This document shows positions 32,491-62,125 of a DNA stretch of 64,000 bases, piece by piece. The notes under the pieces are model-generated. The model had not been told where the DNA came from and ran no database searches. It saw nothing but the letters and a program-made list of their open reading frames with translations. Numbering within the stretch: position 1 is the first letter of the stretch; each line of letters starts with the position of its first letter. Source of the DNA: Anaeramoeba ignava BMAN (Eukaryota; Protista; Anaeramoebae); NCBI GenBank assembly GCA_028826165.1, contig JAPDFW010000147.1:124001-188000 (forward strand). Direction: 5' to 3'. The translations under genes were made by a program, and so were the position numbers.

Positions 32491-35400
32491 ATGGTTTTTA
32501 TTAAAAAAATTATTATTCAAGGATTTAAAAGTTATAAGAATAAAACTGTTATTCAATCACTTTCTCCAAATCATAATATAATTGGTAAATTAAAAATTAA
32601 AAAATCAAAATTAAAATAAAATTTAAAATAAAGATTTAACGGTTTTTTTAAATTAAAAAAAAATTTAAGTTGGAAAAAATGGATCAGGAAAATGTCTTCA
32701 AATAAATACACCAGTTCTTATGTACAACGGAAAAATCAAAATGGTTCAAGATATTAAACCAAATGAAAAATTAATGGGAGAAGATTCTAAACCAAGAACT
32801 GTTCTTACAACAACATCAGGACATGGAAAACTCTTCAGAATAACCCCAAATTCATATAATGGTTCAGAACCGTTTGTTGTTAATGAACATCATATTTTAT
32901 CACTAGCTTATTCTTATTCTCCTTCCCAAAAATTCAATCACAAAATCATATTGATATTCAATTGAATGATTTTCTCAAACTCAATCAAAAAACCCAAAAA
33001 AATTATCTTTGTTACAAAACATCAATTGATTTCCCTTCAAAAAAAGTGGATCAAGATCCGTATTTAATGGGTTTTAACACAAAAACCCAAAATAATTATT
33101 CAAAATTATCCAAATCATATTTAATTAATGATAAATCAACAAGAATGAATTTTTTAGCTGGTTTTCTTGATTCAAATGGATTCATAACCCAAAAAAAATT
33201 CGATTCACAATTTTGTTATGAAATCAATTTTGTTTATGATCAAATTCCTCAAAATATTCCCATTTCAATCAAAAATATTCAATTTCTAGTCCGTTCATTG
33301 GGATTTGCAATTTATTCCAAAGAAACTAGTTTAAATGAAGGAGGTTATTGTTATTCTCTTCAAATTTTTGGTGAGAAAATTGATTCAATTCCTGTTAAAT
33401 TACTTGATAGACAAGTTTTTAGTTCTCAATCAAATTGTAAATATGATTATGACACTTTAACTTCAGATTTTACTATTGATTATATTGGTTATGGTGATTA
33501 TTATGGATTTGAACTTGATGGAAACGGTCGTTTTTTACTTGGTGATTTCACTGTAACTCACAATAGCAATTTTTTTCATGCAATTCGTTTTGTTATTTGT
33601 GATTTATTCCATCAAATGAATCAAATTGAAAAGAATGATCTTTTACATGTAATTTTATTTTGGAAAAAAAAATTTTCTTTTATTTTTAATATTATATTAG
33701 GAAGGAGCTGGTTATTCAGCTGTTTCAGCTTATGTAGAAATTGTTTTTGATAATAAAGATCGAAGATTTCCTGTAAAAAAAAAAAGCAATCAATCAAAAT
33801 TGATTTTCATTTTAATTGATTTTCATTTTAATTGATTTAAATTTAATTAGATTGATCTTGATGAATTCTCTTTAAGAAGAAGTATTGATTTGAAAAAAGA
33901 TGATTATTTTCTTAATCAAAAACATATTTCGTAAGATTAAAAATAAAAATGAAAATAAATTATTAAATAAATTATTAAATAAATTTTTAGAAAAAACGAA
34001 GCAATTAGTTTTTTAGAAAGTGCAGGATTTTCACAATCAAATACATATTATATTGTTCAACAAGGAAAAGTAAGATTTAAATATTAATTTTATTTTAAAT
34101 ATTAATTTTCATTTTAAATATTAATTTTCATTTTAAATATTAATTTTTATTTTAAATACTAATTTTTATTTTAAATATTAATTTTTAATTTAAATACTAA
34201 TTTTTATTTTAAATATTAATTTTTATTTTAAATATTAATTTTTATTTTAAATATTAATTTTTATTTTAAATATTAATTTTCATTTTAAATATTAATTGTC
34301 AATTTAAATATTAATTTTCATTTTAAATATTAATTTTCATTTTAAATATTAATTTTCATTTTAAATATTAATTTTCATTTTAAATATTAATTTTTTAAAT
34401 ATTTTCATTTTAAATATTAATTTTCATTTTAAATATTAATTTTCAATTTAAATATTAATTTTTATTTTAAATATTAATTTTCATTTTAAATATTAATTTT
34501 CATTTTAAATATTATTTTAAATATTAATTTTTTTAGGTTAATTCTTTAGCAACAATGAAAGACCAAGAAAGACTTGAATTATTCAAAGAAATTTCAGGTG
34601 TCCAAATTTATGAAGAAAAAAGAACAGAAAGTCTTTCAATGAACAAACAAGCTGAACAAAAACGTCAGAAAATCCAAGAAACACTAGAAAATATTGAACA
34701 AAGAATCAAAGAACTTGAATCAGAAAATCAAGAACTTCATGAATATCAAAAATTGGATCGCAAGAAAAGATCATTAGAATACGCAATATTTCAAAGGGAA
34801 CTCGAATATATCCAGAAAAAATTGAATACTTTGGATAAAAGACAACAATCGGAACAAAAAGAAACTTCAGAATTTTATCTAAAAGCAGAACATGGAAAAC
34901 AGAAAATAAAAGATTTGCAATACAAAATCAAGACCTTGCAAACAGAGGTTGATGGATTAGAACGCAAAATTAGGGATTCTAGAACAAACAGAGAAGATTT
35001 AATCAAGGAAAAAGTTATGGTTGAATTGGATGTCAATGAACTTGATAAAAGAATTGCTTTTGAAAATGAACGCAAAAAAGAAACTCAACAAAAATTAACC
35101 GCCATTCGTTCCGAATTGGAACAAGCAAGTAAAAAACTTTCCGAAATTGTTCCAAAATTCGAAAATGTCGATCAAGAAGAAAAAAATCTTAAACAACAGC
35201 TCAATTCATTTCAACATGAAATTTCAAGTTTGCAAATGAAACTTTCAGGAAAAAGTCAATTTTCTAATAAAAAAGAAAGAGATCAATGGATTAAGAAAGA
35301 AACCAATAAAATTAGTGAAATTATTGAAACGCAAACAAATCAATTAGAAAATTTGAACAAAGAAAACCAACAATTCAAAAATCAACTTCAAGATCAAACA

Positions 35401-37929
35401 ACTCAATCCAAAATGATTCAAAACACAATTTCTGAACGAAGAACAAGAATTGAAGAAATGGAAAAAACAATTAAGGAATTAATCCAAAAAAGAAACGAAC
35501 AAACAGATCAAAGAAAGTAAATTTAAACAAACAAAAAAAAAAATTCACCTTTTTTTGATCTTCTTTTTTTATTTTGATTGATAAACAGAGAACTTTGGAT
35601 TCAAAAAGAAAAAATTGAGCAAGAATTGATTAAATCATCAAATGATTTTACAAAAAACAAAACCCAACTTTATAGCACAATGAGTAAAGTCCTTTCTTCA
35701 GGACTCCAGGAGGTGGAAAGAATAGCACGAGAGGAATCGCTTCTTGTTCACGGACCTTTGATTGAGCTATTCCATTGCGACGAGGCTTATTTCACAGCAA
35801 TAGAAGTCGCATCTGGAAATAGTTTATTTCATATCGTTGTTGATAGTGATCAAATAACAACCCAAATTTTAAACAAAATGAAAACAGGACGAGTCTCCTT
35901 TCTTCCTTTGAACCGTCTTCAGAATTATCCTGTGGAGCCGATCGATACTTCAGATGCAAAAAATATGATGGATGTTCTTGAATTTGATCCGAAATTCCAA
36001 AAAGCATTTGAACACACATTCTCAAAACATTTGATCTGCAAAGATCTCGAAACAGCAATGGATTATTCCAAACGGTTCGGCAAGAACTGCATTACTCTTG
36101 ACGGTGATCAAGTCCTACGCAAAGGCGCTTTAACAGGAGGCTTTCATGACAAAAGAAAATCGAGATTGAAATCGATGCAAAGCATCAAATCTTGTCGAGA
36201 AAATGTCCAAAACTACCAGCAAAAACACCAAGAAGTCGTTGCGCAAATTGAGGAGATCGATCAAGAGATTACTCAAACACTGAGCGAGATCCATAAAATT
36301 CAGACCCAACAAGCTCAAGAAACTGCAACGTTAAAACACACTGAAATGGAACTCAATACAATCCAGTCTTCAATTCTCAATTTGAACAACACAATTTCAT
36401 CCAAAAGCGCACAGATTGAAAAGCTGGAGATGAATGTGAATCAAATGAAAGAGAAATCCAAGTCTCTTTTGGCTGAGATTGACTCTGAAATGAGCGAGAA
36501 ATTAAATTCTCAAGAAAAAAACAAGATGGAAGAATTACAATCAAAACTAACAGAGTTTGAAGAGAAGGCGAAGAGTATAAAAAAGAAGAGAATGCAAGTA
36601 AGAACAAAAAACATTTTCATTTCCAAATGATATCTTTATTAACAAATGATATTTTTATTATGATTATTTTTATTTTTATTTATTTTTTAGTTCCAAACTG
36701 AAAAAACAAAAATTGAAAACAGAAAAACCTTTCTTACAAAACAAAAACAACTTCTGAAAGCAGATCAACCAACAGATTTGCAATCACTTTCAAATGATCT
36801 TTCACGAGAAGCCGCAAATCTTGAAAGAATCAAACAAGCTCTTGAACAAGAAACATTACAATTAAAAGAAAATGAAAAACAAGTTGAACTAACAAAAGAA
36901 AAAATCAAAAAACAAACAAAAAAACTGAATCAGATCCAAGATTTGCAACAACTTCAATATCAACAAGATCTCGAAGATTCGGGACAATCAGATAGAATAA
37001 TAAGCAAAAGAATCGCGTTGTTAAAAATGGAAAAGATCATGAACAAAAGAAGCACTTTGAACAAGAAAAAAGAAGATTGCTTGAATAATATCCGCGAACT
37101 CGGGTTTTTGCCTTCAAAAGACTTCGAGAAACTCAAGGAAAAACCACAAAAACAACTGATGGAAATGTTTGAGAAATGCAACAAAAAACTGCAAGGCTAT
37201 CAACATGTCAACAAAAAAGCTCATCATCAATATTTGAGTTTCATGGATAAAAGAAAAGAACTTGTTCATCAAAAGAAAAAACTCGATCAAGAATATGAAT
37301 CAATTGAAACATTGATTTCTGACTTGGATCAAAAGAAAGACGAGGCAATCAAACGCTCAATTGAAATCATTAATAATCAATTCCAAGAAATTTTCAACGA
37401 ATTAGTTCCAAATGGAAAAGCTTTTCTTATTATGCAACGCAAAGATATTGAAAAAGAAGAACAAGACAACGAAGTATCCAAAAAATCTGGAATTGAAGAT
37501 ATTTCCAGTACAAGCGATCAAACAATCCCCAATGAGCCAACCGCCACTCTTAAGCAGTATTTCGGAATAGGGATTCGAGTCACTTTTGACAAAGAATCCA
37601 AAGCACTTAAAAATCTTGAAGAGCTTTCAGGTGGGCAAAAAGCACTAGTTGCTCTAAGTTTGCTACTAGCAATCCAAAGAGCAGATCCCGCTCCGTTTTA
37701 TTTATTTGACGAAATTGACTCGGCTTTGGATCCTGGTCGAAGAAGAGATGTTTCTTTTTTGATCCAAAAAATGAGTGAAAATGCACAAGTTATCACCTCA
37801 ACTTTTAAGCCAGAATTGATCGGTATTGGTGACCAATTTTTCCATGTTTCTTACAAGAACCGTGTTTCTGTTATTTCCTCAATTTCAAAGGATCAAGCAA
37901 TTCAAATTATTTCTCAAACACAAAAATAA
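32491..37929 (+). CDS. SMC3: Cohesin subunit SMC3, intein-containing; exons 32491-32584, 32670-33648, 33701-33772, 33851-33930, 33991-34069, 34537-35516, 35589-36597, 36691-37929 (C-terminus may extend to 38092)
   Basis: [15 protein letters not shown]; [18 protein letters not shown]; Q-loop YYIVQQGKV; hinge [24 protein letters not shown]; signature LSGGQK; [15 protein letters not shown]. Confidence 0.95.
32693..33564 (+). mobile_element. Intein (~291 aa) with degenerate LAGLIDADG homing endonuclease in the SMC3 Walker A motif
   Basis: Starts at Cys1 ([13 protein letters not shown], block A); block [13 protein letters not shown]; LAGFLDSNG (block E); IQFLVRSLG (block H); block [18 protein letters not shown]; ends VTHN with +1 Ser; excision restores GKNGSGKSN. 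One base appears to be missing near 32930. Confidence 0.95.
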
Positions 37930-43783: not shown

Positions 43784-46432
43784 TTAAATGAAATAAGTTT
43801 CAAGTTCATCAACAACCCATTCATCATAAGAACCAGCTAAATAACTTTTAGCTTCATTTGTTCCATAAGTAATTCCATTAGGTAGATTATAAATATTTCC
43901 AAAATTTGAATAACCAGGTTGTAATTTATCTTTTAAACGAAAATCAAAACCTATTTTAATAAATATAAATAATTAATTTTAATAATAATTAATAATAATT
44001 TAATTTAAAATTAATTTTATTTTAAATTGAAATAATAATATTATTTATTATATTAATATTTTGGATTATTTATTAATTTAATTTTAATTATAATAATAAA
44101 TATTTATTAAATATAAATTATTTACTCCCTATTTTAATAAAAATAAATAATTAATTTTAATAATAATTAATAATAATTTAATTTAAAATTATTTTTATTT
44201 TAAATTGAAATAATAATAATATTATTTATTATATTAATATTTTGAATTATTTATTAATTTAATTTTAATTATAATAATAAATATTTATTAAATATAATTT
44301 AATTTATTTTAATAAAGATAAATAATTAATTTTAATAATAATTAATAATAATTTAATTTAAAATTAATTTTATTTTTAAATTGAAATAATAATATTATTT
44401 ATTATATTAATATTTTGGATTATTTATTAATTTAATTTTTAATTATAATAATAAATATTTATTAAATATAAATTATTTACAATCTATTTTAATAAAAATA
44501 AATAATTAATTTTAATAATAATTAATAATAATTTAATTTAAAATTAATTTTATTTTAAATTAAAATAATAATATTATTTATTATATTAATATTTTGGATT
44601 ATTTATTAATTTAATTTTAATTATAATAATAAATATTTATTAAATATAAATTATTTACAACCTATTTTAATAAAGATAAATAATTAATTTTAATAATAAT
44701 TAATAATAATTTAATTTAAAATTGATTTTATTTTAAATTAAATTAATAATATTATTATTATTTTTACTTCCAAAAGTTGGACCATCTTTTAAATCATGTT
44801 CAATTGCATATTTTTCTTTTCCTTGTTGAATTGTAAACTTTTCTGGTTTTCTATCTCCTTTATCATTTCTTAATGAAAAAATAAATGCATTTTCATCTTT
44901 AATATATCCCCAATTTCCTCCATCATGCTCTTCACTCCATTTTGATGTATCATTTGTCCATCCAACTTGAGTAAATCCTCCAAAAATAAAATTATCTTTT
45001 GTTTTGATAATAACTAATGTTTTTCCTTTCCCATCAACTGCTTTATGCCAATTTTGAGAATCAAATCCATCATTTTTTGCTGAAAATCCTTTTTTCATTT
45101 TAGAAAAAAAATCATTATCATTTATCCATTCTTGTAATTTCTTAACATATTCTTTATCTTTCACAATTTCTGAATTTGAAAAAATCTTCAACAATTTATT
45201 TTGGTTTTGTTTTGATTCTTCTTTTTGATTTTCTTTTTCAAATGATAATTTAATATTTTGAATTTCTTTATCTTTTTGTTTGATAATCTTTTCTTTCTTT
45301 TCATTTTCAGATTTTAGATTTTGAATATCTTTTTCTTTCTTTTGATTTTCTTGTTTTAAATTTTGATTTTCTTTTTCTTTCTTTTGATTTTCTTGTTTTA
45401 AATTTTGATTTTCAGATTCAAATGATTTAATTTTCTTTTCTTTATTTTCATTTTCCTTGTTTTTGATTTTGATTTTCAGATTTGAGATTTTGATTTTCTG
45501 ATTCAAATGATTTGATTTTTTTATCTCTTCTTTTAATTTTCTTTTCTTTTTCTTGAATTTTCTTTTCATTTTCTTGATCTTGAATTTGAAAAATAGTTCT
45601 TTCAAAATGAATTAAAAAAGAATTTGGAAGAAAAATATCAAATTGTTTTAATTTATCAAAATCTTGTTTTGAAATTGAATCTTTATCAAATAATGAAAAA
45701 AAAGAATGAAATAATCTTTTCTTTGCATTCATTTTGTGTTCATATTTCTTTAATTTTAATGAATTAACTCTTTTTTCAATCCAATTATTTAAAAATTGAA
45801 AAAAATCAAATTGAAAAATTTCTTTTTTTTCTTGTTTAAATTGAATAAATTTGATAATTTCTTCTTTAGTTAAATTGAATAAATTTTCATTATTCTGAAT
45901 TTGGGAAAAATTTTGATTTATTAATTCAAAACATTTTATTTCAATTTCATTTGAATTTTAAATTTCGATTTTGGAATAAAAATTGGAAAAAATTTGAATA
46001 ATTAATTGAATTTAAAATTTTTTTTTGAATAATTTCTTTCAATAAATTTAATTTAAAATAAATTGAAATTTCCAATAATTGAATAAAATTTTCTTGATTC
46101 TCAAAAGAAATATTTCCATAATAAATATAACTTAAAATTGATTCCATTTCTTTTTTATTAAATTGATTTAAAGAAATAGAAAGAGATTCTTGCCTTAATG
46201 ACTCATTAAAAAAAGGAGATCTTGAAGATAAAATTGATTTATGAACTTTAATTTCAAAAGGATTTGATTTATTCTCAACAAAAATTGAAAAATCTTTAAA
46301 TGAATTTCCATTTAAAAGGTTTGAATAATCTTTAATTAAATTTTTTGTTACTTTTTTTTCTAAATTTTTCATTTCATTTTCATTTTCATTTTGATTTGCA
46401 TTTTGAATTTGGTTATTATTATTATTATCCAT
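43784..46432 (-). CDS. BTB/POZ - coiled-coil - TLDc protein, inverted paralogue of the gene at 8476; exons 46432-44768 (apparent +1 shifts at ~45958 and ~45457) and 43950-43784
   Basis: Near-identical BTB N-terminus and TLDc; same intron position; each shift is one extra A relative to the paralogue. Confidence 0.8.
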
Positions 46433-47413
46433 TTTGTTTTTTGTGTTTTTTTGTTTTTGTTTTTGTTTTTTGTTTTGTTGTTTTTTGTTGTTTTTAAAAA
46501 AAAAAGGAAAAAAATGAAAAAAAATAAATAAAAAAGTGGATTTTGAAAATAAATAAAAATATAAAAATAAGAATAAATTTAAATTAATAATTAATTTAAT
46601 TTTCTTTTTAATTTATTATTTTAAATTAATTTATTAATAAATTATTATTATTTTTTATTAATTTTTTTGTTAAAAAAAAGGAAAATTATTTTAATTTAAT
46701 TTTTAATTTAATTTTTTTTTTTGGAATTTAAAAATTATTAATAAATTTAAATTTAAAAACAAATTTCCAAATTAATATTAATTCAATTTAATTCAAAAAG
46801 ATAAAATTTAATTTCAAAAAAATCAATTTTCAAAATATTTTTAAATAATAAAAATTTATTTTTAAAACAATAAAATATTTTTTTAATAATAAAATTAAAT
46901 AATAAATTATATTTTTAAATTAATTTATAAATTAAATATTAAATTAAATCTATTCTTATTTTTATATTTATATTTTAAATATTTAAACAATAAAATATTT
47001 AAAATCTAAAACATTAAATTAATATTTTAAACATAGAATTAAATATTAAATTATATTTTAAATTAATTTATAAATTAAATATTAAATTAAATCAATTTCT
47101 CATTTTTAAATAATAAAATATTTAAATCTAAAACATTAAATTATTATTTTTAAACATAAAATTAAATATTAAATTATATTTTTAAATTAATTTATAAATT
47201 AAATATTAAATTAAATCTATTCCCATTTTTTATATTTATATGTTAAATAATTAAATAATAAAATATTTAAATCTAAAACATTAAATTATTATTTTAATAA
47301 TAAAATTAAATACTAAATTATAATTTAAATATTAAGTTAAATTTAAATTAACTTTTAAAAAATTTTTGATTGTTGTAATTTTTTATTTTTCATTTTTTTT
47401 TTTATTTTATAAA

Positions 47414-47740
47414 ATGGAAGAAAAACAAGAAGAACAAAAAGAAAATGAATTAAATGAAACAGAAACACCAACAACGAATCCATTTAAAAAAGCATTCACG
47501 AACACAATACCATTTTTCGGAAAAGAATTTCCAGCTTGGAGTTTTATGATTGCATTATTAATTTTAACAAGTCTTTTTGGATTAAAAGGATTAATAATAT
47601 TTTTGGTTTTTTATTTTATTGGAAAATGTTTTGGAAGACCTCCTCATTTCCCTCCTCCTCCTTCAGATTCAAATAATAAAACTTCGTGTAGTCGAATCCG
47701 TACTCTTGATGATTATCCTCATTATGGCGGATGACGATAA
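47414..47740 (+). CDS. Candidate selenoprotein: 108-aa membrane protein ending ...RIRTLDDYPHYGG-U-R* (SelK/SelS-like architecture)
   Basis: ATG at 47414; hydrophobic segment WSFMIALLILTSLFGLKGLIIFLVFYFIG; Pro-rich linker; GGC GGA TGA CGA TAA at 47726-47740; SECIS 70 nt downstream. Confidence 0.85.
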
Positions 47741-47810
47741 ATTTTTTCTTATTTTTTCTTTTGATTTTTTTTTCTTTATTTTTTTTCTTTTTGGATCTTT
47801 TCTTTTTCTT

Positions 47811-47879
47811 TCTTTCAAATCTGTGATATTTGTTTTGTAAACTTTGAAAAAAGCCAAAACAAGTTGATTTTTTGGAAGA
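47811..47879 (+). promoter_or_regulatory. Eukaryotic type II SECIS element
   Basis: Helix I TCTTTCAAA/TTTGGAAGA; core GTGAT (47823-47827)/TGAT (47865-47868); helix II ATTTGTTTTG/CAAAACAAGT; unpaired AAA 47839-47841; apical mini-stem CTTT-GAAA-AAAG. Confidence 0.88.
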
Positions 47880-47959
47880 GATGAAATTGAATAAAAATGA
47901 TTTTAAAACAAATTTTCTTTTTATTTTATTTTGTATTTTAATTTATTTTTAATCACTCG

Positions 47960-48384
47960 AATATTGAATATTAAATTGAATATTAAATTGAATATTAAAT
48001 TGAATTGAATATTAAATTGAATTGAATATTGAATTGAATTGAATATTGAATTGAATATTGAATTGAATATTGAATTGAATATTGAATTGAATTGAATATT
48101 AAATTGAATTGAATATTGAATTGAATTGAATTGAATATTGAATATTGAATTGAATATTGGATTGAATATTGAATATTAAATTGAATTGAATATTCAATAT
48201 TAAATTGAATTGAATATTCAATATTAAATTGAATTGAATATTGAATTGAATATTGAATTGAATATTAAATTGAATTGAATATTGAATTGAATATTAAATT
48301 GAATTGAATATTGAATTGAATATTAAATTAAATTGAATATTAAAAATTGAATATTGAATATTAAATTGAATTGAATTGAATTGA
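47960..48384. repeat. (AATTG/AATATTG)n low-complexity repeat
   Basis: Visible 5-7 nt periodicity. Confidence 0.8.
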
Positions 48385-50568
48385 TTAATTTGTTTCTGAA
48401 TCATCTGAATCGCTTATATAACTTGAAACACTCGAATCACTTGAAACAAATGGATCATCTGAATCACTTGAATCACTTGAATCACTTGAATCATTTCTAT
48501 TTAAATTGTTTTAAATTGATTTAAATTGTTTTAGTTTAATATTTAAAAAAAAATATCTTTACTCTTTTTTCTCCAAATTCGAATCCTCTAATCCTTTTGA
48601 ATCTTTTATAAAATCTTCCAAAATGGAATCCAAAAAAGAATTTTGGTTTAATTGAAAATAATCTTTCAAATCTTCAAATTCGTGAATACTTTGATTTGGA
48701 ATTTTAGATTCATCAAGTTGATCATGATATAAAAAATAAACTAAATGATCTAATGTTTCAAAAGACTTTTTGGAATAATCATGAACCTGATTGGATTTAT
48801 CTTCAACATTCAAAACAAACATTCCTTTGAATAAATCACTTCTTGCAATTAAAATCAATTTATGAACTTTGATTTTCTTCTCGTTATCGCAAATAATTGT
48901 GAAATCTTTTGTTTCTTCTTGTTGATATAATTGAGATAAATCTTTCACAATTCCTTTTCTTCTTCGTTTTGATTTTATCCAAGCTGAATCGAATCCAATT
49001 TGTTGGAAAAAATGTTGGATTGTTTGGACTTTTTCTTCATACTCTTTTTGTTCTATTCGGATTTCTTCGATTCTTTTTTGTTTAAATGATTGCTCTTTTT
49101 CATGAAATTTAGAAAAATCGTTCTTTTCGTTCAAAGAAGAAAATTGACTGCTCCATTCCTTCGTTTTGTTGAGATACGAAGTCAAATTTTCCAGTCTTTG
49201 AGTAAATTTGTCGAAATCAGGAAATCCGGTGTAAAGAAAATTAACAGCGAGTTGAACAGTTTCATTTGGCGTTTTTTTGCAAATATTGATGAACTTCTGG
49301 AAAATGGAAGGGTTGTTGTTAAATTTCAATATCAAAAATGATTTATGAACACGAATTTTGGAAGAATCATCGCACTCAATTTCAAAATCAGCAAAATTAT
49401 CACTTGATTTGAAAAATTTGTTGAAATCATCATTGATTGAGAAAAGTTTGGTTACAAAATCGCACATTTCCTGATCCACATATTCTGAGAAACCAAAAAT
49501 ACTTGCTTCGTTCATGAGAAGGAATTTAACAACATTTTCATGATATTTATAAAGAGAATTAGTAAGTGAATGGCTTGTAAAAAAATCTTCATTATTAACT
49601 TCAGCTCCATTTTCAACCATATATTTAATAACCTTAAAAGATTCTGTTTTTTGATATTGGCAAAGCAAGTCCAAAGGGTATTGACCCCATCTATCAAGAA
49701 TATTCATATCAGCTCCATTTTCAACCATTGCCTTTATTACTTCAAATGCATATTTCTTGTTGTGATATTCACATCCTAAATGCAAAGGTGTATATCCTGA
49801 TAAATTTTTGGGATTCATATCAGCTCCATTTTTTGCAAACAATTTGATGAGTTCTGCCGAGTTCTCATCTTGAAAATTGCAAAAATTATGCAAAGGTGTT
49901 TCGTTTTCGAGGTTTTTATCATTAACATCTGCTCCTTTTTCAATCATGAATTCGAGAAGTTTATAGATGTTTCTTCCTTCACCATGACAAGCGTAACGAA
50001 ACGGTGTGACAAATTTATTGTTTTTGTAATTGACATCGGCACCCTTTTCAACTAGAAGTTTGGTTAGTTCAAGTATTTTTTGTTTTTGCCAATTGCAAAC
50101 TAAATGCAAAGCAAGATCGCCTTCATTATTTGGAATTTTTGGATCAGCCCCTTTTTTAAGAAGTAGCTCAATAACTGGAATTGCGTTTTGCTTTTGATAG
50201 TGACAAGCAAAATGTAAAGGTGTTTGTCCTTTGTTGTTTGTGGTGTTGATGAGTGCTCCTTTTTTAATGAGAAGTTTGAGAATTTTTACTGTTTTTCCAT
50301 GTTTTTGATATTGACAAACAATATGTAAAGCTGTTTGTTGATATTTTGTTTTGGCATTAACATCTATTCCTTTTTTAACCAAGAGCTTAATAATTTTGAT
50401 TGAGGATTGACTTTTTTGATATTGACAAACAATATGTAAAAGAGTTTGTTTATTTTTGTTGGTTGCATTGATATCTTTATATTCGCTAATTAATTGAATA
50501 ATTTTTTGAAAATTACTTGAATATCTACAAATACTATGAAGATCTTTTTCATTTTCATTTTGATTCAT
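48385..50568 (-). CDS. Ankyrin-repeat + BTB/POZ domain protein; exons 50568-48563 and 48496-48385
   Basis: About 9 ankyrin repeats (TPLHFAC..LLKKGAD); two BTB-like segments (DFEIEC..IRVHK, DFTIIC..IKVHKLILIARSDLFKGMF); phase-2 intron adds a Ser/Asp tail. Confidence 0.85.
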
Positions 50569-50698
50569 TTTTTTTCTTTTTTTTTTAATTTTGATTGAAG
50601 AAATTTGAAAGAAAAAGCAAAAAAAAAATGATTTAAAAAATTTTTCAAAAACAGTAAAATCATTTTCTTTTTATTTTATTTTGTATTTTAATTTATTT

Positions 50699-53383
50699 TT
50701 AATCACTTGAATCACTTGAATCACTACTAGTTGCATCAATTTTATCAAGTTCATCAATTTCATCCATTAAACTATTTAAATCTTCATCTCCACTTTTTTC
50801 ACTTTTTGAATCATTTTTAATTTTTAAATCATTTTTAATTTTTGAATCATTTTTAATTTTTGAATCATTTTTAATTTTTGAATCATTTTTAATATTTAGG
50901 AGATGTAAAAGATTTGGAGTTTTAGAGTTATTTTCAATATTTTCAATATTTTCATCATTTTCAATATTTTCATCATTTTCAATATTTTCATCATTTTCAA
51001 TATTTTCATCATTTTGAATATTTTCATCATTTTGAATTTTGGAATCATCTCGATAATTGAAAATATCTGGAAAATTTGAAATATCTGGAATATTTTGAAT
51101 ACTGTCATAATTTGATAATGAAAAATCTTCTTCTTCTTCTTTTTGTTTTTGTTGGAAAATTTCAATTAAATTTCTTTTTGATTCTTTTTCGGTGGTTTTT
51201 GTTGATTGATCAAAAGATTCAGAAACCTTAGGTTTTAATCTTTTAATATCAGTTTGAATATCATTTGATTGTTTCCTTTTTGTACGTGATTTATTATTTT
51301 CTAAATTCAAATTTTCAGTTAGATTTTCTATTGAAAAAGGAAATTGATTTTCTTCGTTAAAGAATGGAAATTGTTTTTTTTCAGGTGATTTTTTTGGTTC
51401 TCGAATTATATTAGGCATAAACTTTTGTAAATTTAATTTTGTTTTGGATATTTGATCTTTTATAATATTTTTTTCTTTTAATTCATTTTCATCTATATTT
51501 TGATTTTGATCTTGATTTTGGTTTAAATTTTGATCTTCATCTAAATCGTCTTCATTTAAATCATCATCTGATTCTTCTAAATTTTTTAAATCATCTTCAT
51601 TTAAAACATCATCTTGAAAAAAATCATCATCTTCATCTAAAACATCATCTTGAAAAAAATCATCTTCTTCCTCTAATTCATCATCTCCATCTTCACCATC
51701 TAAATCATTTTGATTTAAAGTTTCATTCTGAAAATTATCATTTTTTAAATTAAAATAATCTTCTTGATTATTCAAATCATTTTGAAGATAAAAATTTGAA
51801 TTAAATTTTGAATCATCTTCATCTTCATCTTCATCTTCATCTTCAATTTCATTTTCATTTTCAATTTCATTTTCATTTTCATTTTCATTTTCATTTTCAT
51901 TTTCATTTTCATTTTCATTTTCATTTTCATTTTCATTTTCATTTTCATTTTCATTTTCATTTTCATTTTCATTTTCATTTTCAATTTCATTTTCAATTTC
52001 ATCTTCAGTTTGATCTTCATCTAAATCTTCACTTAAATCAGAAAGAGAAAAAGATTTTTTATGTAAAATATCCCTTTTTTGATAATCCTAGTTTATATAA
52101 TATTGATTAGTATAATATAGTGAATAAAAAAATAAGGTGAATATTTTACTTGTTGTTTACGATTATTTATTGAATGATTTTGAAAAATATAATCCAAAAT
52201 TTCAGAAGCATTTTCAATATCATCCAAATCATTAATATAATATCGAGGATCAAAATCAGATGAAGAATCCAGAAGATCTGGATCGAAAAGCTCACTTGAA
52301 CTATCTGAATTATCTACATTTTCTATATTTTGTAAATTTTCTATATTTTCTATATTTTCTATATTTTGTAAATTATCTACATTTTCTATATTTTCTATAT
52401 TTTGTAAATTTTCTATATTTTCTATATTTTGTAAATTTTCTATATTTTCTATATTTTGTAAATTTTCTATATTTTGTAAATTTTCTATATTTTGTAAATT
52501 TTCTATATTTTGTAAATTTTCTATATTTTGTACATTTTCTATATTTTGTAAATTTTCTATATTTTCTGTATTCTTTTTTCGATATTTTAGATGTTTTCTA
52601 TTCTTTCTGAGTTCGTAATCTTGGAAGATTTGGATAGGAAATTAAATCATTAAAATCACTTGTTTCTAAATTATATTCAGATGAATTTTCAGATGAATTT
52701 TCAGATAAATTTTCAGATTCTTGATATTCAGATTCTTCATTTTCAGATTCTTCATTGTCATTTAAAAGTGAATCAATTTTAAAAGGAAATAACTGAATTA
52801 GACGAACAAGTCTTGGGTGATTTAATATAACTTTTTCAACTTCATTTTCATGAACTTTAAACGTTTGAGGCAAATAAGTAAGAGTATTTACATATTTTTC
52901 AGATGTATAAATGATAACTTCTTCAATTAATTTTTTCAACCAAGAACGAACCAAATTATTAAAAGATTTCAAAAATTGATAGCTAAAATTTTGGTTTGAA
53001 TTTGATTGATTATCGATAATTCTTTGCATATTATCCATATAAAAAATTTGATCCAATTCTTCAATCAAAAGTTCTTTTTTATGAATTTTACGTTTTTCAT
53101 TTAAAAGTAATTCATTTTCATTATTTTGTGATATCAATGTTGTTTGTTCAATTTCCTCTTCTAATTCTATATTTGATGTTTTGGGTAATCTTTTTTGACT
53201 CCTTTTTAATAGTTGAAATTTTTTAGTTGCTTTTTTAGTTTTAAAATAAATATTTGCAACTTGAAGTGGATTAACAGAACCAACTTTTTTAGCAATAAGT
53301 TGAAATGATTCAAAATTAGGTTTATAAGCAAGATAAAGATAACGGAAAATTTTATTTTTTAAAGTCAAATTAACTTTTTTCAT
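50699..53383 (-). CDS. Acidic low-complexity protein with SANT/Myb-like and histone-fold-like N-terminal regions; apparent frameshift ~52610, intron 52149-52088
   Basis: ORFs 53383-52598 and 51775-50699 are linked by an open frame (ENIENLQN repeats, DEDE tracts) and a GT-AG intron. Confidence 0.55.
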
Positions 53384-53553
53384 TTAGAAAAGAAAAGAAA
53401 AGAAAAAAATGAAATTTAAAAAGGAGAAAAAAAAAATTTAAAAAAAAAAACAAAAGGAGAAAAAGAAAAACAAAAACAAAATTTAATTTTTTTTTCATTT
53501 TTTCATTTTTTCATTTTTTCATTTTTTCATAAATAAATTTCTGTTTTAATTAA

Positions 53554-56500
53554 ATGGGAAATCAATTAAATCAAAATCAAGATCCAAATAAAAAAAAAGA
53601 CGATAAAAAAAAACAAGATAAAAAAAGTAAACAAACATCAGAACCAGCAAGAATTGGAAGAAGAAAAAAACGAGGGCCAGATGGTGTTTTCAAGCTTCCT
53701 ACAGTTAAACCGCACACAAAATGCAAGTTAAAGTTATTGAAAAATGAACGGATTAAAGATTATTTGTTAATTGAAGAAAAATTCATTAAAAATATTAATA
53801 AAATTCAACCAAAAAAAGAAGAACAAGAAAAAGAAATGGTTGAACAATTGGAATCTTTGCGTGGTTCTCCAGTAAAGGTTGGTACTCTTGAAGAAATTAT
53901 TGATGATGACCATGCTATTGTTTCTGTTAGTATGGGTCCTACTTATTATGTTCCTGTTACAAGGTTTATATTTTCCTTTTTTTTTATTTTTACAATTCAA
54001 AAACAAAATTAAAATTAAAATTAAAATTAAAATTAAAATCAAAATTAAAATTTAAAATTAAATTAAAATCAAAATTAAAACAAATTTAAAATTAAAATTA
54101 AAACAAATTTAATTTAAAATTAAAATTAATTTAAAATTAAAAACAAAATTAAAATTAAAATTTAAAATTAAAAATAAAATTTAAAATTAAAATTAAAATT
54201 AAAAACTAAAATTAAAATTAAAATTAAAATTAAAATTAAAATTAAAATTAAAATTAAAATTAAAATTAAAATTAAAATTAAAATTAAAATTAAAAATTAA
54301 AATTAAAATTAAAATTAAAATAAAAATTAAAATTAAAATTAAAAACAAATTTAAAAAACAAAATTAAAATTAAAATAAAAATTAAAAATTAAAATTAAAA
54401 TTAAAAACAAAATTAAAATTAAAATTAAAATCAAAATTAAAATTAAAATTAAAATTTATATTAAAATTAAAAACAAAAACAAATTAAAATTAAAATTTAT
54501 AATTAAATTTAATTATTTTTAGTGTTGTTGATAAAGATCTTCTTGAACCTGGTTGTACAGTTCTTCTTCATAATAAAGTTCTTGCAGTTGTTGGAATCTT
54601 ACAAGATGAAGTTGATCCTCTTGTAAGTGTTATGAAAGTTGATAAAGCACCACTTGAAACTTATTCTGATATTGGAGGTTTAGCTGAACAAATTATGGAA
54701 ATTAAAGTAAAAATTAAAATTAAAATCAAATTTAAAATTAAAATTAAAATTAAAATTAAAATTAAAAAAATTAAAATTAAAATTCAAAATTAAAATTAAA
54801 ATTAAAATTAAAATTAAAATTAAATTAAATTAAAATTAAAAAAATTAAAAATTAAAATTAAAATTAAAATTAAAATTAAAATTAAAATTAAAATTAAAAT
54901 TAAAATTAAAATTAAAATTAAAATTAAAATTAAAATTAAAATTAAAATTAAAATTAAAATTAAAATTAAAATTAAAATTAAAATTAAAATTAAATTTAAA
55001 ATTAAAATTAAAATTAAAATTAAAATTAAAATTAAAATTAAAATTAAAATTAAAATCAAAATTAAAATTAAAATTAAAATTAAAATTAAATTTAAAATTA
55101 AAATTAAAATTAAAATTAAAATTAAAATTAAAATTAAAAATTAAAATTAAAATTAAAATTAAAATTAAAATTTAAATTAAATTTAAAATTAAAATTAAAA
55201 TTAAAAATTAAAATTAAAATTTAAAATTAAAATTAAAATTTAAATTAAATTTAAAATCGGAAAAAAATCAAAAAATAGGAAACTGTTGAATTACCTCTTA
55301 CACATCCAGAATTATATGAAGATCTTGGAATTCAACCACCAAAAGGAGTAGTTCTTTATGGACCACCAGGAACAGGTAAAACCCTTTTAGCAAGAGCAGT
55401 TGCAAATCAAACAAGTGCAACATTTTTAAGAGTTGTTGGTTCTGAATTAATTCAAAAATATCTTGGTGATGGTCCAAAATTAGTTCGTGAACTTTTTAGA
55501 ACAGCCAAAGAAGAAGCTCCTTCAATTGTTTTTATTGATGAAATTGATGCTGTTGGAACAAAAGTAATAATAAATAATAAATAAATATTAAATAATAAAT
55601 AAATATTAAATAATAAATAATAAATATTAAATATTAAATAATAAATAAATATTAAAATTAAATATTAAATAATAAATATTAAATATTAAATATTAAATAT
55701 TAAATAAATATTAAATATTAAATATAAAAATATTAAAATTAAATATTAAAAATAATAAAATAATAAATAAATAATATAGAGATATGACTCACATTCAGGA
55801 GGAGAACGAGAAATTCAAAGAACTATGCTTGAATTACTTAATCAACTTGATGGATTTGATTCGAGAGGAGATGTAAAAGTTATAATTGCAACAAACAGAA
55901 TTGATACACTTGATCCAGCTTTAATTAGACCAGGAAGAATTGATAGAAAAATTTATTTCCCTCTTCCTGATACAAAAACAAAAAGAAAAATTTTTCAAAT
56001 TCATACTAGTAAAATGACATTAGCTGAGGATGTTGATTTAGATGAATTTATAATGACTAAAGATGATCTTTCTGGAGCTGATATTAAAGTGATATTATTC
56101 AATATTATATTTATATTTCAAAATATATTTATATTCCAAAATATATTTATATTCCAAAATATATTTATATTCCAAAATATATTTATATTCCAAAATATAT
56201 TTATATTCCAAAATATATTTATATTTAATAATATATTTATATTTAATATTATATTTATATTTAATATTATATTTATATTTAATAATATATTTATATTTAA
56301 TAATATATTTATATTTAATAATATATTTATATTTAATATTATATTTATATTTAATAATATATTTTATATTTATTTTATATATTTAATATTATATTTATAT
56401 TTAATATTATATTTATATTCAATATTATAATTTTATTTCAAAATTATATTTATATGTTTAATTATATTTTATATTTTAATATTATATTTATATTTTAATA

Positions 56501-59190
56501 TTATATTTATATTATTTATTATATTTATATTTGTTTATATTTTAATATTATATTTATATTTAATATTATATTTATATTTTAATATTATGTTTTATATTTA
56601 TACAATATATATTATATTTTATATTTAATATTATATATTATTTAATATATGTTTATATTTTAATATATATTTATGTTTCCAAAATATATATTTATGTTTA
56701 AAAATATATTTTATATTCAATAATATATTTTTATTATGTTATATTTATTTATATTTTATTTATATTCCAAAAATATATTTATATTCCAAAATATATTTAT
56801 ATTCCAAAAATATTTTTATTTCAAAAATATATGTTTATGTTTCAAAAATATATTTTTATTTTCAATAATATATTTATATTTTATATATTTATATTTAATA
56901 TTATATTTGTTTATATTTATATTTAATATTTATATTTATATTTAATATTTTATATTTAATATTATATTTTATTATTTAATATTATGTTTATATTTAATAA
57001 TATATTTATATTTTAATTTATGTTTATATTTATATTTTATTTTATTTTATATTATTTAATTTAATTTATATTTTATATTTTTATTTATGTTTATATTTTA
57101 TGTTTATATTTTATTTAATTTTGTTTTATGTATTTTATGTTTTATATTTATATATTTAATATTATATATTTAATTATTGTATATTTATATTCAATATATT
57201 TATATTTTTATATTTAATATTTATGTTTATATTTAAATATTATGTTTATGTTTTTATATTTTATTTTTATTATGTTTATATTTTATTTATTATGTTTATT
57301 TTTATTTATTATATATTTAATATTATATTTATATTTAATATTATTTATATTTATGTTTATATTATATTTTATGTTTATATATTTATTTATGTTTATTTAT
57401 GTTTATGTTTATATTTTATGTTTATGTTTATTTTTTTATATATTTTATGTTTATTTATATTATGTTTATATTTATATATTATATTTGTATTTGTTTGTTT
57501 TATGTTTAATATTTATGTTTATGTTTTTATATTATGTTTATGTTTAATATTATGTTTATATTTAATATTATAATATTTTTTATTTATATTATTATATTTT
57601 ATATTTTATTAATATTTTATGTTTTATATATTATTTTATTTATAATTATGTTTAATTTATATTATGTTTTTATATTTAATTTATATTTATTTTTTATTTA
57701 TGTTTATATTTTAATATTATGTTTATTTTTTAATTTTATATTTATATTTTTTTATATATGTTTCAATGTTTATTATATTTATGTTTTTATTTTTATATTT
57801 ATATTTTTAATATTATGTTTATTTATTTTATATTATGTTTATGTTTATTTAATATATTATGTTTATATTTAATATTATATTTATATTTAATATTATATTT
57901 ATATTTAATATTATGTTGTATATTTTAATATTATGTTTATGTTTATATTATATTTTATAATATTTCAATGTTATATTTATATTTATTTTATATTTAATAT
58001 TATATTTATATTTAATATTATATTTTTATTTTTAATAATATATTTATGTTTAATATAATATGTTTATATTTTATTTTATTTATATTTATGTTTATATTTT
58101 ATATTTATTTTGTTTTTAATATTAATATGTTTATGTTTTTAAATATGTATTTATATTTTATAATTTTTTTATTTTTTTTTATTTTATATTTATATATATT
58201 TATATTTTATATTTAATATTATGTTTTATATATTTAATATTATATTTATGTTTAATATTATATTTTTATATTTAATTTATATTTATGTTTATATTTAATA
58301 TTTTATGTTTTTATATTTATATTTAATATTATATTTATATTTAATATTATATTTATATTTATTAATATTATATTTATATTTAATAATATATTTATATTTA
58401 ATATTTATTTTTATTTTAATATATTTATATTTTAATAATATATTTTAATATTTTTATATTTAATATTTATATTTATATTTAATATTATATTTTATGTTTA
58501 ATGTTATATTTTATATTTAATATTATATTTATATTTAATATTATGTTTATATTTATATTTTATATATTTTATGTTTAAAATTATATTTATATATTTAATA
58601 TTATGTTTATTTTAATTATATTTTATATTTAATATTATATTTATATTTAATATTATATTTTATATTTAAATTATATTTATATTTTAATATTATATTTATA
58701 TTTAATATTATATTTATATTTAATATTATGTTTATATTTAATATTATATTTATATTTAATATTATATTTATATTTAATAATTATATTTATATTTAATATT
58801 ATATTTATATTTAATATTATATTTATATTTAATATTATATTTATATTTAATATTATATTTATATTTAATATTATATTTATATTTAATATTATATTTATAT
58901 TTAATATTATATTTATATTTAATATTATATTTATATTTAATATTATATTTATATTTAATAATATATTTATATTTAATATTATATTTATATTTAATATTAT
59001 ATTTATATTTAATATTATATTTATATTTAATAATATATTTATATTCCAAAATTAGGCTATTTGTTCTGAAGCTGGTTTATTGGCTTTAAGAGAAAGAAGA
59101 ATGAAAGTAATTCAAAATGATTTTAGAAAAGCAAAAGAAAAAGTTCTTTATAGAAAACAATCAAGTGTTCCAGAAAGTCTTTTCATTTAA
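53554..59190 (+). CDS. PSMC1: 26S proteasome AAA-ATPase regulatory subunit 4 (Rpt2); exons 53554-53963, 54523-54706, 55279-55563, 55780-56088, 59056-59190
   Basis: MGN N-terminus; [26 protein letters not shown]; [23 protein letters not shown]; GPPGTGKT; [17 protein letters not shown]; FIDEID; [28 protein letters not shown]. Confidence 0.97.
56089..59055. repeat. ~3-kb intron of degenerate 18-nt tandem repeats (ATATTTAATATTATATTT)n
   Basis: Clean repeats at both ends, noisier in the middle; bounded by GT and AG. Confidence 0.85.
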
Positions 59191-60059
59191 AAACAAATTG
59201 ATTTCTTCGTCATTTCTCTTTCTTTTTTTTTTCAAAGTAATTTTTCAAATTTAAATTTAAATTCAATTTCAATTTCAAATTAAAATTTTTTCATTTGTTT
59301 TAAAATAGGTTTTGCTTTTTTTTTAAAAAAATTTACTTCTAAAAAAATTCAAAAGAATAAAACAAAAATTAAAACTAAAGCTTTTAAATTATTTTATTAA
59401 AATTAATTTGTTCTATTTTAATTTTCTTTTAATCCAAAAAAACCCCCAAAATAAGAAAAGAAAAAAAATTTTTTTTTTCAAATTAATAAATAATTAAATT
59501 TAATAAATCTAATAAATCTATTAAATCTAATAAATCTAATAAAAATTAATAAAAGGTGAAATTTTTCATAAGAGTTGAAAAATGCTAAATAGAAAATTTC
59601 AATTAAAAAAAGTTAAAAAAATTTTTAATCCCTTTTCTTATTTATTTTCTTTATTTATTTTTAAGTGTGATGGGATAAAAGAAAAAGAATGAGAATAAAA
59701 AATAAAATATAAGAAAATGATTAATTAAATAAGAAATTAAAATTATTTCTTTTTCTTTTTTTAAGTTCACCTTATGAAAAAAATAATAAAAATAATAAAA
59801 ATGAAAAAAGATTTAATCCAGCTCAAGTTTATAATTGATCTTAATTAAAAATTAATTAAAAATTAATTAAAAAAAATTTATTTGTAATTTTAAAAAAAAA
59901 AACAGATCTATTTAATCAAACAATAAAAAATTTTTTTTATTTGAAAAAAAAAAAAAAAAATAAAAATAATTTTAATTAAAAAAGTTACTTTTTTCCTTTC
60001 AATTTTTTGTTTTTGGAACACAATTAAAAAATTTAAAATAAAAATAATAATAACTTAAA

Positions 60060-60467
60060 ATGGAAAAAAAAGAAATAAAGAATAAAGCATCAAATTATTC
60101 AGAAATATTAGAAGCTATTTATCCAGATAGAAGTTGGGTAGTATTTTCAAATGGAACATTTATAATTTTTAAAGAAAAGAAAAAAGACGAAGAAGAATTA
60201 AAAAAAGATGCAATTAAATTTTTAGAACGAGAGGGAGAAGTAGTTATTGGAACAGAAAAAGCAAACTTCAAAGTTTTGAGGTTTGATGCAACTTGGCCAA
60301 TCGATCCAGTTTTTTGTGTGTATTTTCATTGTGGTAAGAAATTGGGGAATATCCAAATTTCAGATGAATTACAAACAATTGTTGGTTTAAATGGTCGCTC
60401 AAGTAGACAAAAAGATTTTTCTAATCCGGTCATTATTAATTGGAAATTACTGGGAAATTTGAAATAA
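60060..60467 (+). CDS. Intronless 135-aa hypothetical protein
   Basis: ATG-initiated ORF of complex composition, GC above flanks (SWVVFSNGTFIIF..EGEVVIGT..GLNGRSSRQKD). Confidence 0.7.
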   Translation: MEKKEIKNKASNYSEILEAIYPDRSWVVFSNGTFIIFKEKKKDEEELKKDAIKFLEREGEVVIGTEKANFKVLRFDATWPIDPVFCVYFHCGKKLGNIQISDELQTIVGLNGRSSRQKDFSNPVIINWKLLGNLK

Positions 60468-60899
60468 ATTGTTTAACTTCTTAGTTCAAAAATTTTTTCC
60501 TTTTTTTCGTTTTTTTAAGTTTAATTTTCTTCTTAAATTTTAATAAAAAATTTTACTTTGAAATGGAATTAGTTTTTTGGATTGAATTTGCTTATTGAAA
60601 AATTTTCAGTTTAATTATTCTTGTTTTAATCCCCCCTTTATTTGTTTTTATTTGATCTTTTCTTTCTTTTGAAAAAAAAATTAACAAAAAAAAATTTGAG
60701 TGGATTTCTTAGGAAAATTGGTTTAATAAACAAAGTAAGAAATTTTAAAATTAAATTTTTAATTCTAAACAACGATCCATTTAGAAGAAAATTGAATAGA
60801 AAAAACTTAATTTTTAGAACCCCTTTTTTATTACAAATTACTTATTTTTAATTTGATCGTTATCAAAATGAAAAATTTTTAATTATGATTTTGACAGCT

Positions 60900-62125
60900 C
60901 AATTTTTTATAAATAATTATAAATTAAGTTTTCAATTTTAAACATAGATCAAATTGTAAATTTATTATTTAGAAAATATTCTTTTAAAAATGTCTTTTTT
61001 TAATATTTGGGAATTATTAAGAAAATTGAGTTTACTTGAAATGAAAAATTTTTTAATTTTTTATAAGAATTTTTAATTAAATTTTCAATTTTAAACATAG
61101 ATCAATTTGTAAATTTATTATTTAGAAAATATTCTATTGGAAATATTGTTTTGTTTATTTAAAAATTATTTTAAAATCTTTATTAAAAAATTTGATGAAT
61201 TTTGATTAATTTTTTATAAATAATTTTAAATTAAATTTTCAATTTTAAACATAGATCAATTTGTAAATTTATTATTTAGAAAATATTCTATTGGAAATGT
61301 CTTTTTTAATATTTGAGAATTATTTTAAAATCCTTATTAAAAAATTTGATTAATTTTGATTAATTTTTTATAAATAATTTTAAATTAAATTTTCAATTTT
61401 AAACATAGATTAATTTTTAAATTTATTATTTAGAAAATATTCTATTGGAAATATTGTTTTAATTATTTAAAAATTATTTTAAAATCTTTATTAAAAAATT
61501 TGATTAATTTTGATTAATTTTTTATAAATAATTTTAAATTAAATTTTCAATTTTAAACATAGATCAATTTTTAAATTTATTATTTAGAAAATATTTTATT
61601 GGAAATATTGTTTTGTTTATTTAAAAATTATTTTAAAATCTTTATTAAAAAATTTGATTAATTTTGATTAATTTTTTATAAATAATTTTAAATTAAATTT
61701 TCAATTTTAAACATAAATCAATTTTTAAATTTATTATTTAGAAAATATTTTATTGGAAATATTGTTTTGTTTATTTTAGAATTATTTTAAAATCTTTATT
61801 AAAAAATTTGATGAATTTTAATTAATTTTTTATAAATAATTTTAAATTAAATTTTTAATTTTAAACATAAATCAATTTTTAAATTTATTATTTAGAAAAT
61901 ATTCTATTGGAAATATTGTTTTGTTTATTTTAGAATTATTTTAAAATCTTTATTAAAAAATTTGATGAATTTTAATTAATTTTTTATAAATAATTTTAAA
62001 TTAAATTTTTAATTTTAAACATAGATCAATTTTTAAATTTATTATTTAGAAAATATTCTATTGGAAATATTGTTTTGTTTATTTAAAAATTATTTTAAAA
62101 TCTTTATTAAAAAATTTGATTAATT
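60900..62125. repeat. 154-bp tandem repeat, about 8 copies
   Basis: AAACATARATCAAT marker at ~60940, 61093, 61247, 61401, 61555, 61709, 61863, 62017. Confidence 0.88.

Follow-up and report, generated by a model that had tools for sequence, protein, structure and literature searches.

Does the in-frame TGA at 47732 of this Anaeramoeba ignava sequence end a small membrane protein, or is it read as selenocysteine (Sec)? The codon lies in a stretch of 64,000 nucleotides (contig C137, positions 124001-188000), referred to here as the window, which was analysed together with the A. ignava assembly (42.8 Mb, 147 contigs). A preliminary description of the window had pointed out that an open reading frame stops at this TGA within GGC GGA TGA CGA TAA, and had proposed that a downstream stem-loop allows the UGA to be decoded as Sec. 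The sequence at the end of the frame is indeed ...CAT TAT GGC GGA TGA CGA TAA, with a further sense codon and a TAA stop directly after the TGA.

The window is extremely AT-rich, with a GC content of 4-15% in intergenic DNA and 22-39% in coding DNA. The 106-aa frame that starts at ATG 47414 has a GC content of 0.31, against 0.06-0.14 in its flanks, and encodes a protein whose acidic and polar N-terminus is followed by a hydrophobic segment and then by a polar tail, rich in Pro, that ends ...RIRTLDDYPHYGG. A BTB-domain gene lies on each side. Both of these genes are on the minus strand, and a plus-strand hairpin at this position is therefore assignable only to the 106-aa frame. TGA terminates 6 of the 25 long open reading frames in the window, so it is not a rare stop there. 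In the public annotation the UGA is taken as a stop: the protein models for the A. ignava gene and for two orthologues in Anaeramoeba flamelloides (106, 111 and 115 aa) each stop just before TGA, which is the truncation by standard annotation that had been predicted. An intron at the UGA was considered and ruled out, since neither species has a GT donor at the TGA or ahead of it. The features of the locus are collected in Table 1. The AATAAA that follows the hairpin may serve as a polyadenylation signal, although this hexamer turns up often in DNA so rich in AT.

Table 1. Features of the candidate selenoprotein gene (positions in the window)
Feature	Position	Strand	Basis and remarks
CDS up to UGA	47414..47731	+	106 codons, single exon; identical to public model P0001
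Membrane anchor, residues 41-73 (predicted)	47534..47632	+	Two hydrophobic helices split by F-G-x-K-G motif; alignment, AlphaFold, sub-threshold DUF4605 match
In-frame UGA, predicted Sec (residue 107)	47732..47734	+	Directly 3′ of Gly-Gly codons
CGA (Arg108), then putative real stop TAA (47738-47740)	47735..47740	+	Sequence; orthologues have GSRKC + TAA here
3′UTR spacer	47741..47808	+	Stop codon to SECIS; T-rich, GC 0.13
Form-2 (type II) SECIS (predicted)	47809..47881	+	Folds, pattern scan, covariance model R2, orthologue architecture
AATAAA, possible polyadenylation signal	47890..47895	+	Motif scan; 9 nt past SECIS

The hairpin downstream of the TGA can be folded into a form-2 SECIS element. 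Helix I consists of 11 bp (47809-47819 with 47871-47881), and is separated by an internal loop of 3 nt on each side from the core, in which a 5′ GUGA (47823-47826) faces a 3′ UGA (47865-47867) to give the quartet U.U, G.A, A.G and U.U. Helix II follows with 10 bp, including one G-U pair (47828-47837 with 47855-47864). Exactly 12 nt past the core's UGA comes an unpaired AAA (47839-47841), and a GAAA loop is closed by an apical mini-stem of 4 bp (47842-47845 with 47850-47853). Helix I starts 74 nt and the core 92 nt from the UGA codon. The features listed in the preliminary description were thus recovered at approximately the distance given there (70 nt), namely the GUGA/UGA core, the 10-bp helix II, the AAA at 12 nt and the mini-stem; helix I had been described as 9 bp and is longer. 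The element shares with the canonical form-2 SECIS (RF00031) its helix I, internal loop, quartet, helix II, AAA 12 nt past the core and mini-stem, but has a G before the quartet. GUGA had been called a recognised core variant, and GUGA_AA does count among the accepted SECIS patterns, with examples in green algae and sponges (PMC3473315). The hairpin forms a local GC island (0.27, against 0.13), and by folding energy alone it does not stand out (z -2.2). The region is present as a single copy in the genome, and a derivation of the hairpin from a repeat or mobile element was rejected for this reason.

A strict SECIS pattern matched a single site on the two strands of the 64-kb window, the candidate itself, against 0.09 hits in block shuffles. 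We then scored the hairpin with a covariance model, R2, built from six other A. ignava SECIS elements with the candidate left out; five of the six were found by RF00031, and the sixth lies some 950 nt past the final exon of SPS2. R2 was seeded from one element to which the rest were realigned, because MAFFT failed on the 3′ halves of SECIS elements. The candidate was the top R2 match in positions 46700-64000 (17.3 kb), with 29.1 bits and an E-value of 0.0025 in 34.6 kb, a rough value given the short calibration and the AT-rich genome, and the runner-up scored 21.5 bits. All 19 modelled pairs are formed in the candidate and none is broken.

At genome scale the same score carries little weight, since an R2 score of 28.5 bits corresponds to E 8.3 and one of 29 bits to about E 6. 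The genome-wide R2 search scored 150 of about 127,000 first-look candidates, and the candidate SECIS was outside those scored. The R2 score is therefore significant only given the position of the hairpin right after a UGA. Scaled from the search of 46700-64000, the chance expectation of an R2 match of at least 29 bits in the 300 nt that follow a given stop codon, on its own strand, is about 2e-5; scaled further to a few thousand TGA-ending open reading frames, it becomes roughly 0.1.

Other models did not report the hairpin. A covariance model made from a single sequence (R1, with E-values as rough as those of R2) did not find it, and proved too sequence-specific. No SECIS was reported in an Rfam scan of 47300-48100, and a genome-wide search with RF00031 (SECIS_1) returned five other SECIS elements, with the candidate absent. 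The SPS2 SECIS likewise escaped RF00031, and the SECIS of thioredoxin reductase (TrxR) scored under the model's own cut-off. Because of these two cases, the silence of RF00031 on the candidate says little.

Whether a UGA in this genome could be decoded as Sec depends on the machinery, for which the preliminary description had proposed a search. The A. ignava genome contains a tRNA-Sec (70.3 bits; called tRNA-SeC with anticodon TCA by ARAGORN), SepSecS (404 bits), a SelD/SPS2 gene of three exons, the first of which contains one in-frame TGA, and two KTI12/PSTK-family genes. The best SelB-like GTPase, on contig C78, scored 147.8 bits against about 119 for the next hits, a difference that does not discriminate it from other translational GTPases. 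With tRNA-Sec, SepSecS, a UGA-containing SPS2 and KTI12/PSTK-family genes, A. ignava is able to read UGA as Sec.

The genome's other SECIS elements gave a local standard for comparison. Upstream of the five RF00031 elements lie a TrxR gene whose product ends GCUG, three SelW/Rdx-like genes whose redox motif contains U, and a short open reading frame with two UGA codons; after folding, all five elements show AUGA, 12 nt and AAA. A SelK-like gene on contig C15 is spliced, with exon 1 MENNRRKVFPQQTRTESNESRIFTKIQNILLAILQFLKIL and a last exon ending ...RRNSFSTLSFFSGGGG-U-GGGNC. The spacing of 12 nt between core and AAA was found in seven of seven other A. ignava SECIS elements (TrxR, three SelW-like, the two-UGA micro-ORF, SPS2 and the C15 SelK-like gene), and the candidate has the same spacing. 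The core is AUGA in all seven of these and GUGA in the candidate.

Relatives of the protein were few. When the single sequence was run against a word index of proteins, only the protein itself came back, in the form of the public 106-aa model. An exhaustive phmmer search of 1.84 billion representatives gave one relative (P0002, E 2.5e-6), and a follow-up profile search yielded the members P0002 (M0813_27802) and P0003 (M0812_05610) from A. flamelloides and P0004 (M0811_05750) from A. ignava. No relative outside Anaeramoeba was found in the exhaustive search of 1.84 billion representatives. M0813_27802, which occurs in two assemblies, and M0812_05610 are about 30-35% identical to the candidate. 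P0004, encoded on contig C58, is a Sec-less paralogue, in which the anchor is kept, the tail is acidic and unrelated, and the stop is TAA.

The ends of the two A. flamelloides genes bear directly on the UGA. Both annotated proteins end ...PQKPKTG, with TGA as the next codon after the Gly. In M0813_27802 the DNA continues TGA GGA TCA CGA AAA TGT TAA (the same in two assemblies), and in M0812_05610 it continues TGA GGA TCA CGC AAG TGT TAA. Past the annotated end both copies would decode as U-G-S-R-K-C-stop. The only two differences between the extensions (CGA/CGC and AAA/AAG) are synonymous, as is the difference (GGC/GGG) in the codon for the Gly that precedes the UGA; as evidence of selection the two changes in the extension count for little, because the extension is only five codons long and the copies are 94% identical in DNA. 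In the protein alignment a block IRTLDDYPH in A. ignava corresponds to IHTLKDLPQ in A. flamelloides; between this block and the predicted Sec there are 3 residues in A. ignava and 5 in A. flamelloides, the last of them a Gly each time. The A. flamelloides TGA thus falls two residues further in the alignment, which is the same position if an indel of 2 residues is allowed. A search for homologues with UGA or Cys at this position had been suggested: UGA is present in both orthologues, and no Cys homologue was found among the relatives.

Each A. flamelloides gene also has a predicted form-2 SECIS about 236 nt downstream, with GUGA, 12 nt, AAA, a 4-bp mini-stem and the 3′ GA; under R2, which was trained on A. 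ignava elements, the A. flamelloides SECIS scored 18.6 bits. By eye, the 3′UTRs of the A. ignava gene and of the A. flamelloides orthologues have no apparent sequence similarity. The sequence of helix II is wholly different between the two species and its pairing is kept. Between the two A. flamelloides copies of the SECIS there are two changes in the helices, G-C to G-U and A-U to G-U. As judged from the predicted elements, the GUGA core is specific to this gene and conserved across A. ignava and A. flamelloides, the seven other A. ignava elements examined being AUGA. Taken at the level of sequence, these orthologues, with UGA after Gly, a short extension and a GUGA SECIS, are the decisive support for predicted Sec decoding.

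What kind of protein carries the predicted Sec can be read in part from the alignment. The four family members have in common a start Met, a polar N-terminus and a hydrophobic stretch, in which L48, F55, G56, K58, G59, F66 and G70 are invariant. An AlphaFold model made from a shallow alignment places a helix at residues 41-55, a break of two residues at G56-L57, and a second helix at 58-73. A pLDDT of about 80 is reached only at residues 41-70, most of the remaining chain scoring under 50 (mean pLDDT 57.8; pTM 0.29). The anchor modelled in this way, helix, break and helix, fits a membrane hairpin and a kinked single transmembrane (TM) helix alike, given the low confidence of the model. The tail, of about 35 residues, is rich in Pro, Ser and Asn and was modelled as disordered. 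The ESM Atlas gave no match above 0.78 by features and TM-scores below 0.5 by structure, and a profile search of the PDB with the protein found nothing.

The organisation of the protein resembles that of SelK and SelS, which are themselves grouped by organisation and not by sequence (PMC9344019). Like SelK, it is a membrane protein of about 100 aa without a CxxU motif or a globular domain and with a Pro-rich disordered tail past the anchor (PMC9344019). Again as in SelK, the predicted Sec follows Gly-Gly, little distance separates the UGA from the real stop, and a short 3′UTR contains the SECIS. The Sec would be the second residue from the C-terminus, compared with the third in SelK. The two differ further in the tail, which is rich in Pro, Ser and Asn here and in Gly in SelK, and in the anchor, modelled as helix, break and helix with an invariant FGxKG, compared with one plain TM helix in SelK. 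The family also includes a paralogue without Sec and without the tail. SelS (SELENOS/VIMP) has in common with the candidate a membrane anchor, an intrinsically disordered tail and a penultimate Sec. It is, however, 189 aa long, against 108 aa here, and no SelS family was listed in an hmmscan of the candidate at E up to 10.

A first alternative is that the gene is a very divergent but true member of the SelK family, paralogous to the C15 SelK-like gene, which would leave Sec decoding unchanged. In its favour is the shared organisation, with a small size, a membrane segment, a disordered tail rich in Pro, and a Sec that follows Gly-Gly and stands 2-6 residues from the end. A distant relationship to SelK is conceivable because the U-x4-C end is common to the A. 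flamelloides orthologues (U-GSRK-C) and the C15 gene (U-GGGN-C). An x-T-L-x motif also lies 9-12 residues before the Sec in every tail (IRTLDD, IHTLKD, FSTLSF). Human SelK has INHL at about this position. The profile comparisons did not bear the relationship out: the Pfam family SelK_SelG (PF10961) gave no match to P0001, P0002 or P0003 at E up to 10, a weak test in that the SelK-like exons of C15 do not match either, and a search of the A. ignava genome with PF10961 gave no match, its control also finding nothing. BLASTP of the candidate against each of the two C15 exons separately returned nothing at E 100. Against the relationship, too, is the hydrophobic segment, whose invariant FGxKG signature is a different one and is common to the Sec-less paralogue. 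We consider membership of SelK unlikely, while counting it as a serious alternative.

A second possibility is that the protein is a homologue of the metazoan-type FAM241/DUF4605 proteins that has acquired a Sec tail. FAM241A and FAM241B are small membrane proteins, and a likeness to them had been suspected in the preliminary description from the hydrophobic stretch. That stretch does give the best Pfam match, to DUF4605 (PF15378), in all three Sec-containing members, and in each the match is confined to the same part of the profile (positions 29/30-54; residues 45-69 of the candidate). The sizes are also similar (106-115 aa compared with 121-132 aa). The scores of 10.2, 15.6 and 7.2 bits (E 0.69, 0.014 and 6.1) are, however, far under the cut-off of 27 bits. 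The matches are limited to the hydrophobic segment, where composition alone can give such matches, and the Sec-less paralogue P0004 did not match DUF4605. FAM241 proteins are not selenoproteins. Their TM domain is near the C-terminus, as opposed to the central anchor found here (residues 41-73 of 108), they have a conserved N-terminal block of 20 residues, and they are reported only from multicellular animals, being undetected in single-celled eukaryotes (PMC11880036). Homology to FAM241/DUF4605 is quite improbable.

That UGA 47732 is the plain stop of a 106-aa protein, and the hairpin a chance or unrelated 3′UTR structure, is very improbable: the use of TGA as a stop elsewhere in the window, the public annotation, the modest z of the hairpin, the silence of the Rfam models and the roughly six chance matches expected genome-wide at this R2 score are all compatible with it, but it does not account for so high an R2 score this close downstream of the codon, for the raised GC content of the hairpin, or for A. 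flamelloides orthologues which, with dissimilar 3′UTRs, share the placement of the UGA, have their own SECIS with the rare GUGA core, and conserve the codons past the UGA at the amino-acid level.

The locus is therefore very probably a single-exon A. ignava selenoprotein gene in which UGA 47732 would be read as Sec, and which belongs to a small family confined so far to Anaeramoeba. The proposal that the UGA is decoded as Sec has gained the support of the machinery, of the SECIS geometry of the genome itself and of the A. flamelloides orthologues, all of it drawn from genomic data. The suggestion of an undescribed family has held as far as the searches went, with no Pfam family above threshold and relatives only in Anaeramoeba. 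The protein has a SelK/SelS-like organisation, but by sequence comparison it belongs to no demonstrable known family. Opinion is more evenly divided on a stronger version, that the gene may found a selenoprotein family not described before, restricted to Anaeramoebae or so far visible only there, with an FGxKG anchor, a Sec tail added independently of SelK and SelS, a tail-less paralogue and a gene-specific GUGA core; we would give this an even chance.

On the preferred reading, Sec decoding, translation would begin at ATG 47414, and the form-2 SECIS in the 3′UTR would recruit the Sec-insertion machinery, so that Sec-tRNA(Sec) is used at UGA 47732 instead of termination. An Arg would be added after the Sec and translation would end at TAA 47738, giving a product of 108 aa that ends GG-U-R. 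The redox function, topology and location that we propose for this product are pure inference, by analogy with SelK and SelS. The protein may reside in an endomembrane with its tail in the cytosol. The selenol, close to the C-terminus on a disordered Pro-rich tail, could then act as a membrane-tethered redox group. SelS is described as forming a Cys174-Sec188 selenenylsulfide (PMC3628699). The U-x4-C end of the A. flamelloides orthologues would permit an analogous bond. In the Anaeramoeba proteins a selenenylsulfide might be formed and resolved with a partner protein or with a Cys of the tail, candidates for which are the terminal Cys of U-x4-C in A. flamelloides and Cys72 or Cys93 in A. ignava. 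Reduction would probably be by the organism's own thioredoxin system, in which the reductase, too, is a selenoprotein.

The recoding system suggested here is ordinary and the organisation of the protein is familiar; what is new is the sequence family, which is undescribed and apparently lineage-restricted. A 2026 preprint notes two tRNA-Sec genes in Anaeramoeba pumila. Beyond that remark our literature search found no description of an Anaeramoeba selenoproteome and no literature joining 'selenoproteome' and 'Metamonada', and selenium is absent from the main text of the paper on the A. ignava and A. flamelloides genomes. Together with TrxR (GCUG), SPS2 and the SelW-like and SelK-like genes, the candidate points to a full selenoproteome in Anaeramoebae, a deep anaerobic lineage.

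According to the published view, SECIS cores vary in pattern with the organism and not with the gene (PMC3473315). A GUGA core conserved with one gene among the AUGA elements of one genome runs counter to that view, and hints at gene-specific tuning of Sec insertion. For the annotation of these genomes, the three public models (one from A. ignava and two from A. flamelloides) lose the residue that probably carries the chemistry of the protein. The new sequence family would join the SelK/SelS class of membrane-tethered proteins with Sec in the tail, the chemistry of which is still poorly understood. If confirmed, it would provide that class with an independently evolved or extremely diverged example, together with a natural Sec-less paralogue, and would be useful for comparison.

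Two tandem arrays composed only of A and T enclose the main selenoprotein gene. The upstream array (window 46860-47340) is an imperfect repeat of ~125 nt, and the downstream array (window 47940-48370) is a long (GAATTGAATATT)-type microsatellite occupying the gap up to the next gene. The larger of the two BTB/POZ neighbours encodes ~6 ankyrin-repeat blocks together with the BTB domain. Elsewhere in the window, the consecutive plus-strand ORFs listed in the table are parts of an SMC gene. A Pfam search of the 1195-aa ORF gave no match at E 0.001; this ORF lies partly inside the stretch of highest GC content in the window (0.39 at 16001-18000).

Three SelW/Rdx-like genes were found in the A. ignava assembly, one of them on the same contig as the window, ~320 kb downstream. 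All three carry selenocysteine (U) within the redox motif, reading IGUGIYG..., IGUGIFG... and KKGUSDS..., and each has a SECIS element with an AUGA core and an unpaired AAA at 12-nt spacing. An intron interrupts the coding sequence in at least L016. Directly downstream of the SelW-like gene on contig C15 lies a spliced SelK-like gene, whose exons are parted by a repeat-filled intron of ~1.3 kb. Its last exon encodes the C-terminus GGGG-U-GGGNC, and its own AUGA SECIS is located ~130 nt 3′ of the stop.

Coordinates of the features described (G000, the A. ignava assembly; C, its contigs; L, loci cut from them)
Feature	Location	Strand	Detail
SelW/Rdx-like gene	L012 (G000:C137:506125-509186)		
SelW/Rdx-like gene	L015 (C15:53934-56991)	minus	
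SelW/Rdx-like gene	L016 (C1:508941-511998)	minus	
SelK-like gene	L027 (G000:C15:51667-54693) + L015:1262-1381	minus	spliced
Short ORF	L014 (G000:C73:330704-333765)	minus	two in-frame UGAs
Additional R2 match	L023 (G000:C77:126669-129731)	minus	C77:128169-128231
Thioredoxin reductase gene	L013 (G000:C2:448278-451340)		ORF end near locus 812; SECIS at locus 1501-1563
SelD/SPS2 SECIS	L022 (G000:C64:1030064-1033134)		locus 1501-1571
BTB/POZ neighbours	window 45947-46432 and 48559-50568	minus	
1195-aa ORF	window 14609-18196	minus	
SMC gene ORFs	window 34555-37929	plus	SMC_N match at 36778-37926

The short ORF in L014 encodes the peptide ...KMC-U-MLFACCFGDDDGKPRC...SSECSEG-U-N, and a SECIS of 29 bits (Rfam) lies downstream of both UGAs; it may represent a two-Sec micro-selenoprotein. 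An additional match (28.5 bits, genome E 8.3) was obtained in L023 with R2, the covariance model built from six other A. ignava SECIS elements. No obvious UGA-containing ORF was found upstream of it, and this match may therefore be due to chance or mark an unrecognised selenoprotein gene.

The thioredoxin reductase ends in ...KKTGC-U-G, the GCUG being a classic selenoprotein C-terminus. Its SECIS, ~690 nt further 3′, scored 32.2 bits with Rfam SECIS_1, under the 35-bit cut-off. The SelD/SPS2 SECIS, ~950 nt 3′ of the last exon, scored 47 bits with R2 and was missing from the results of the genome-wide SECIS_1 search. The Rfam model therefore under-calls SECIS elements in the A. ignava genome.
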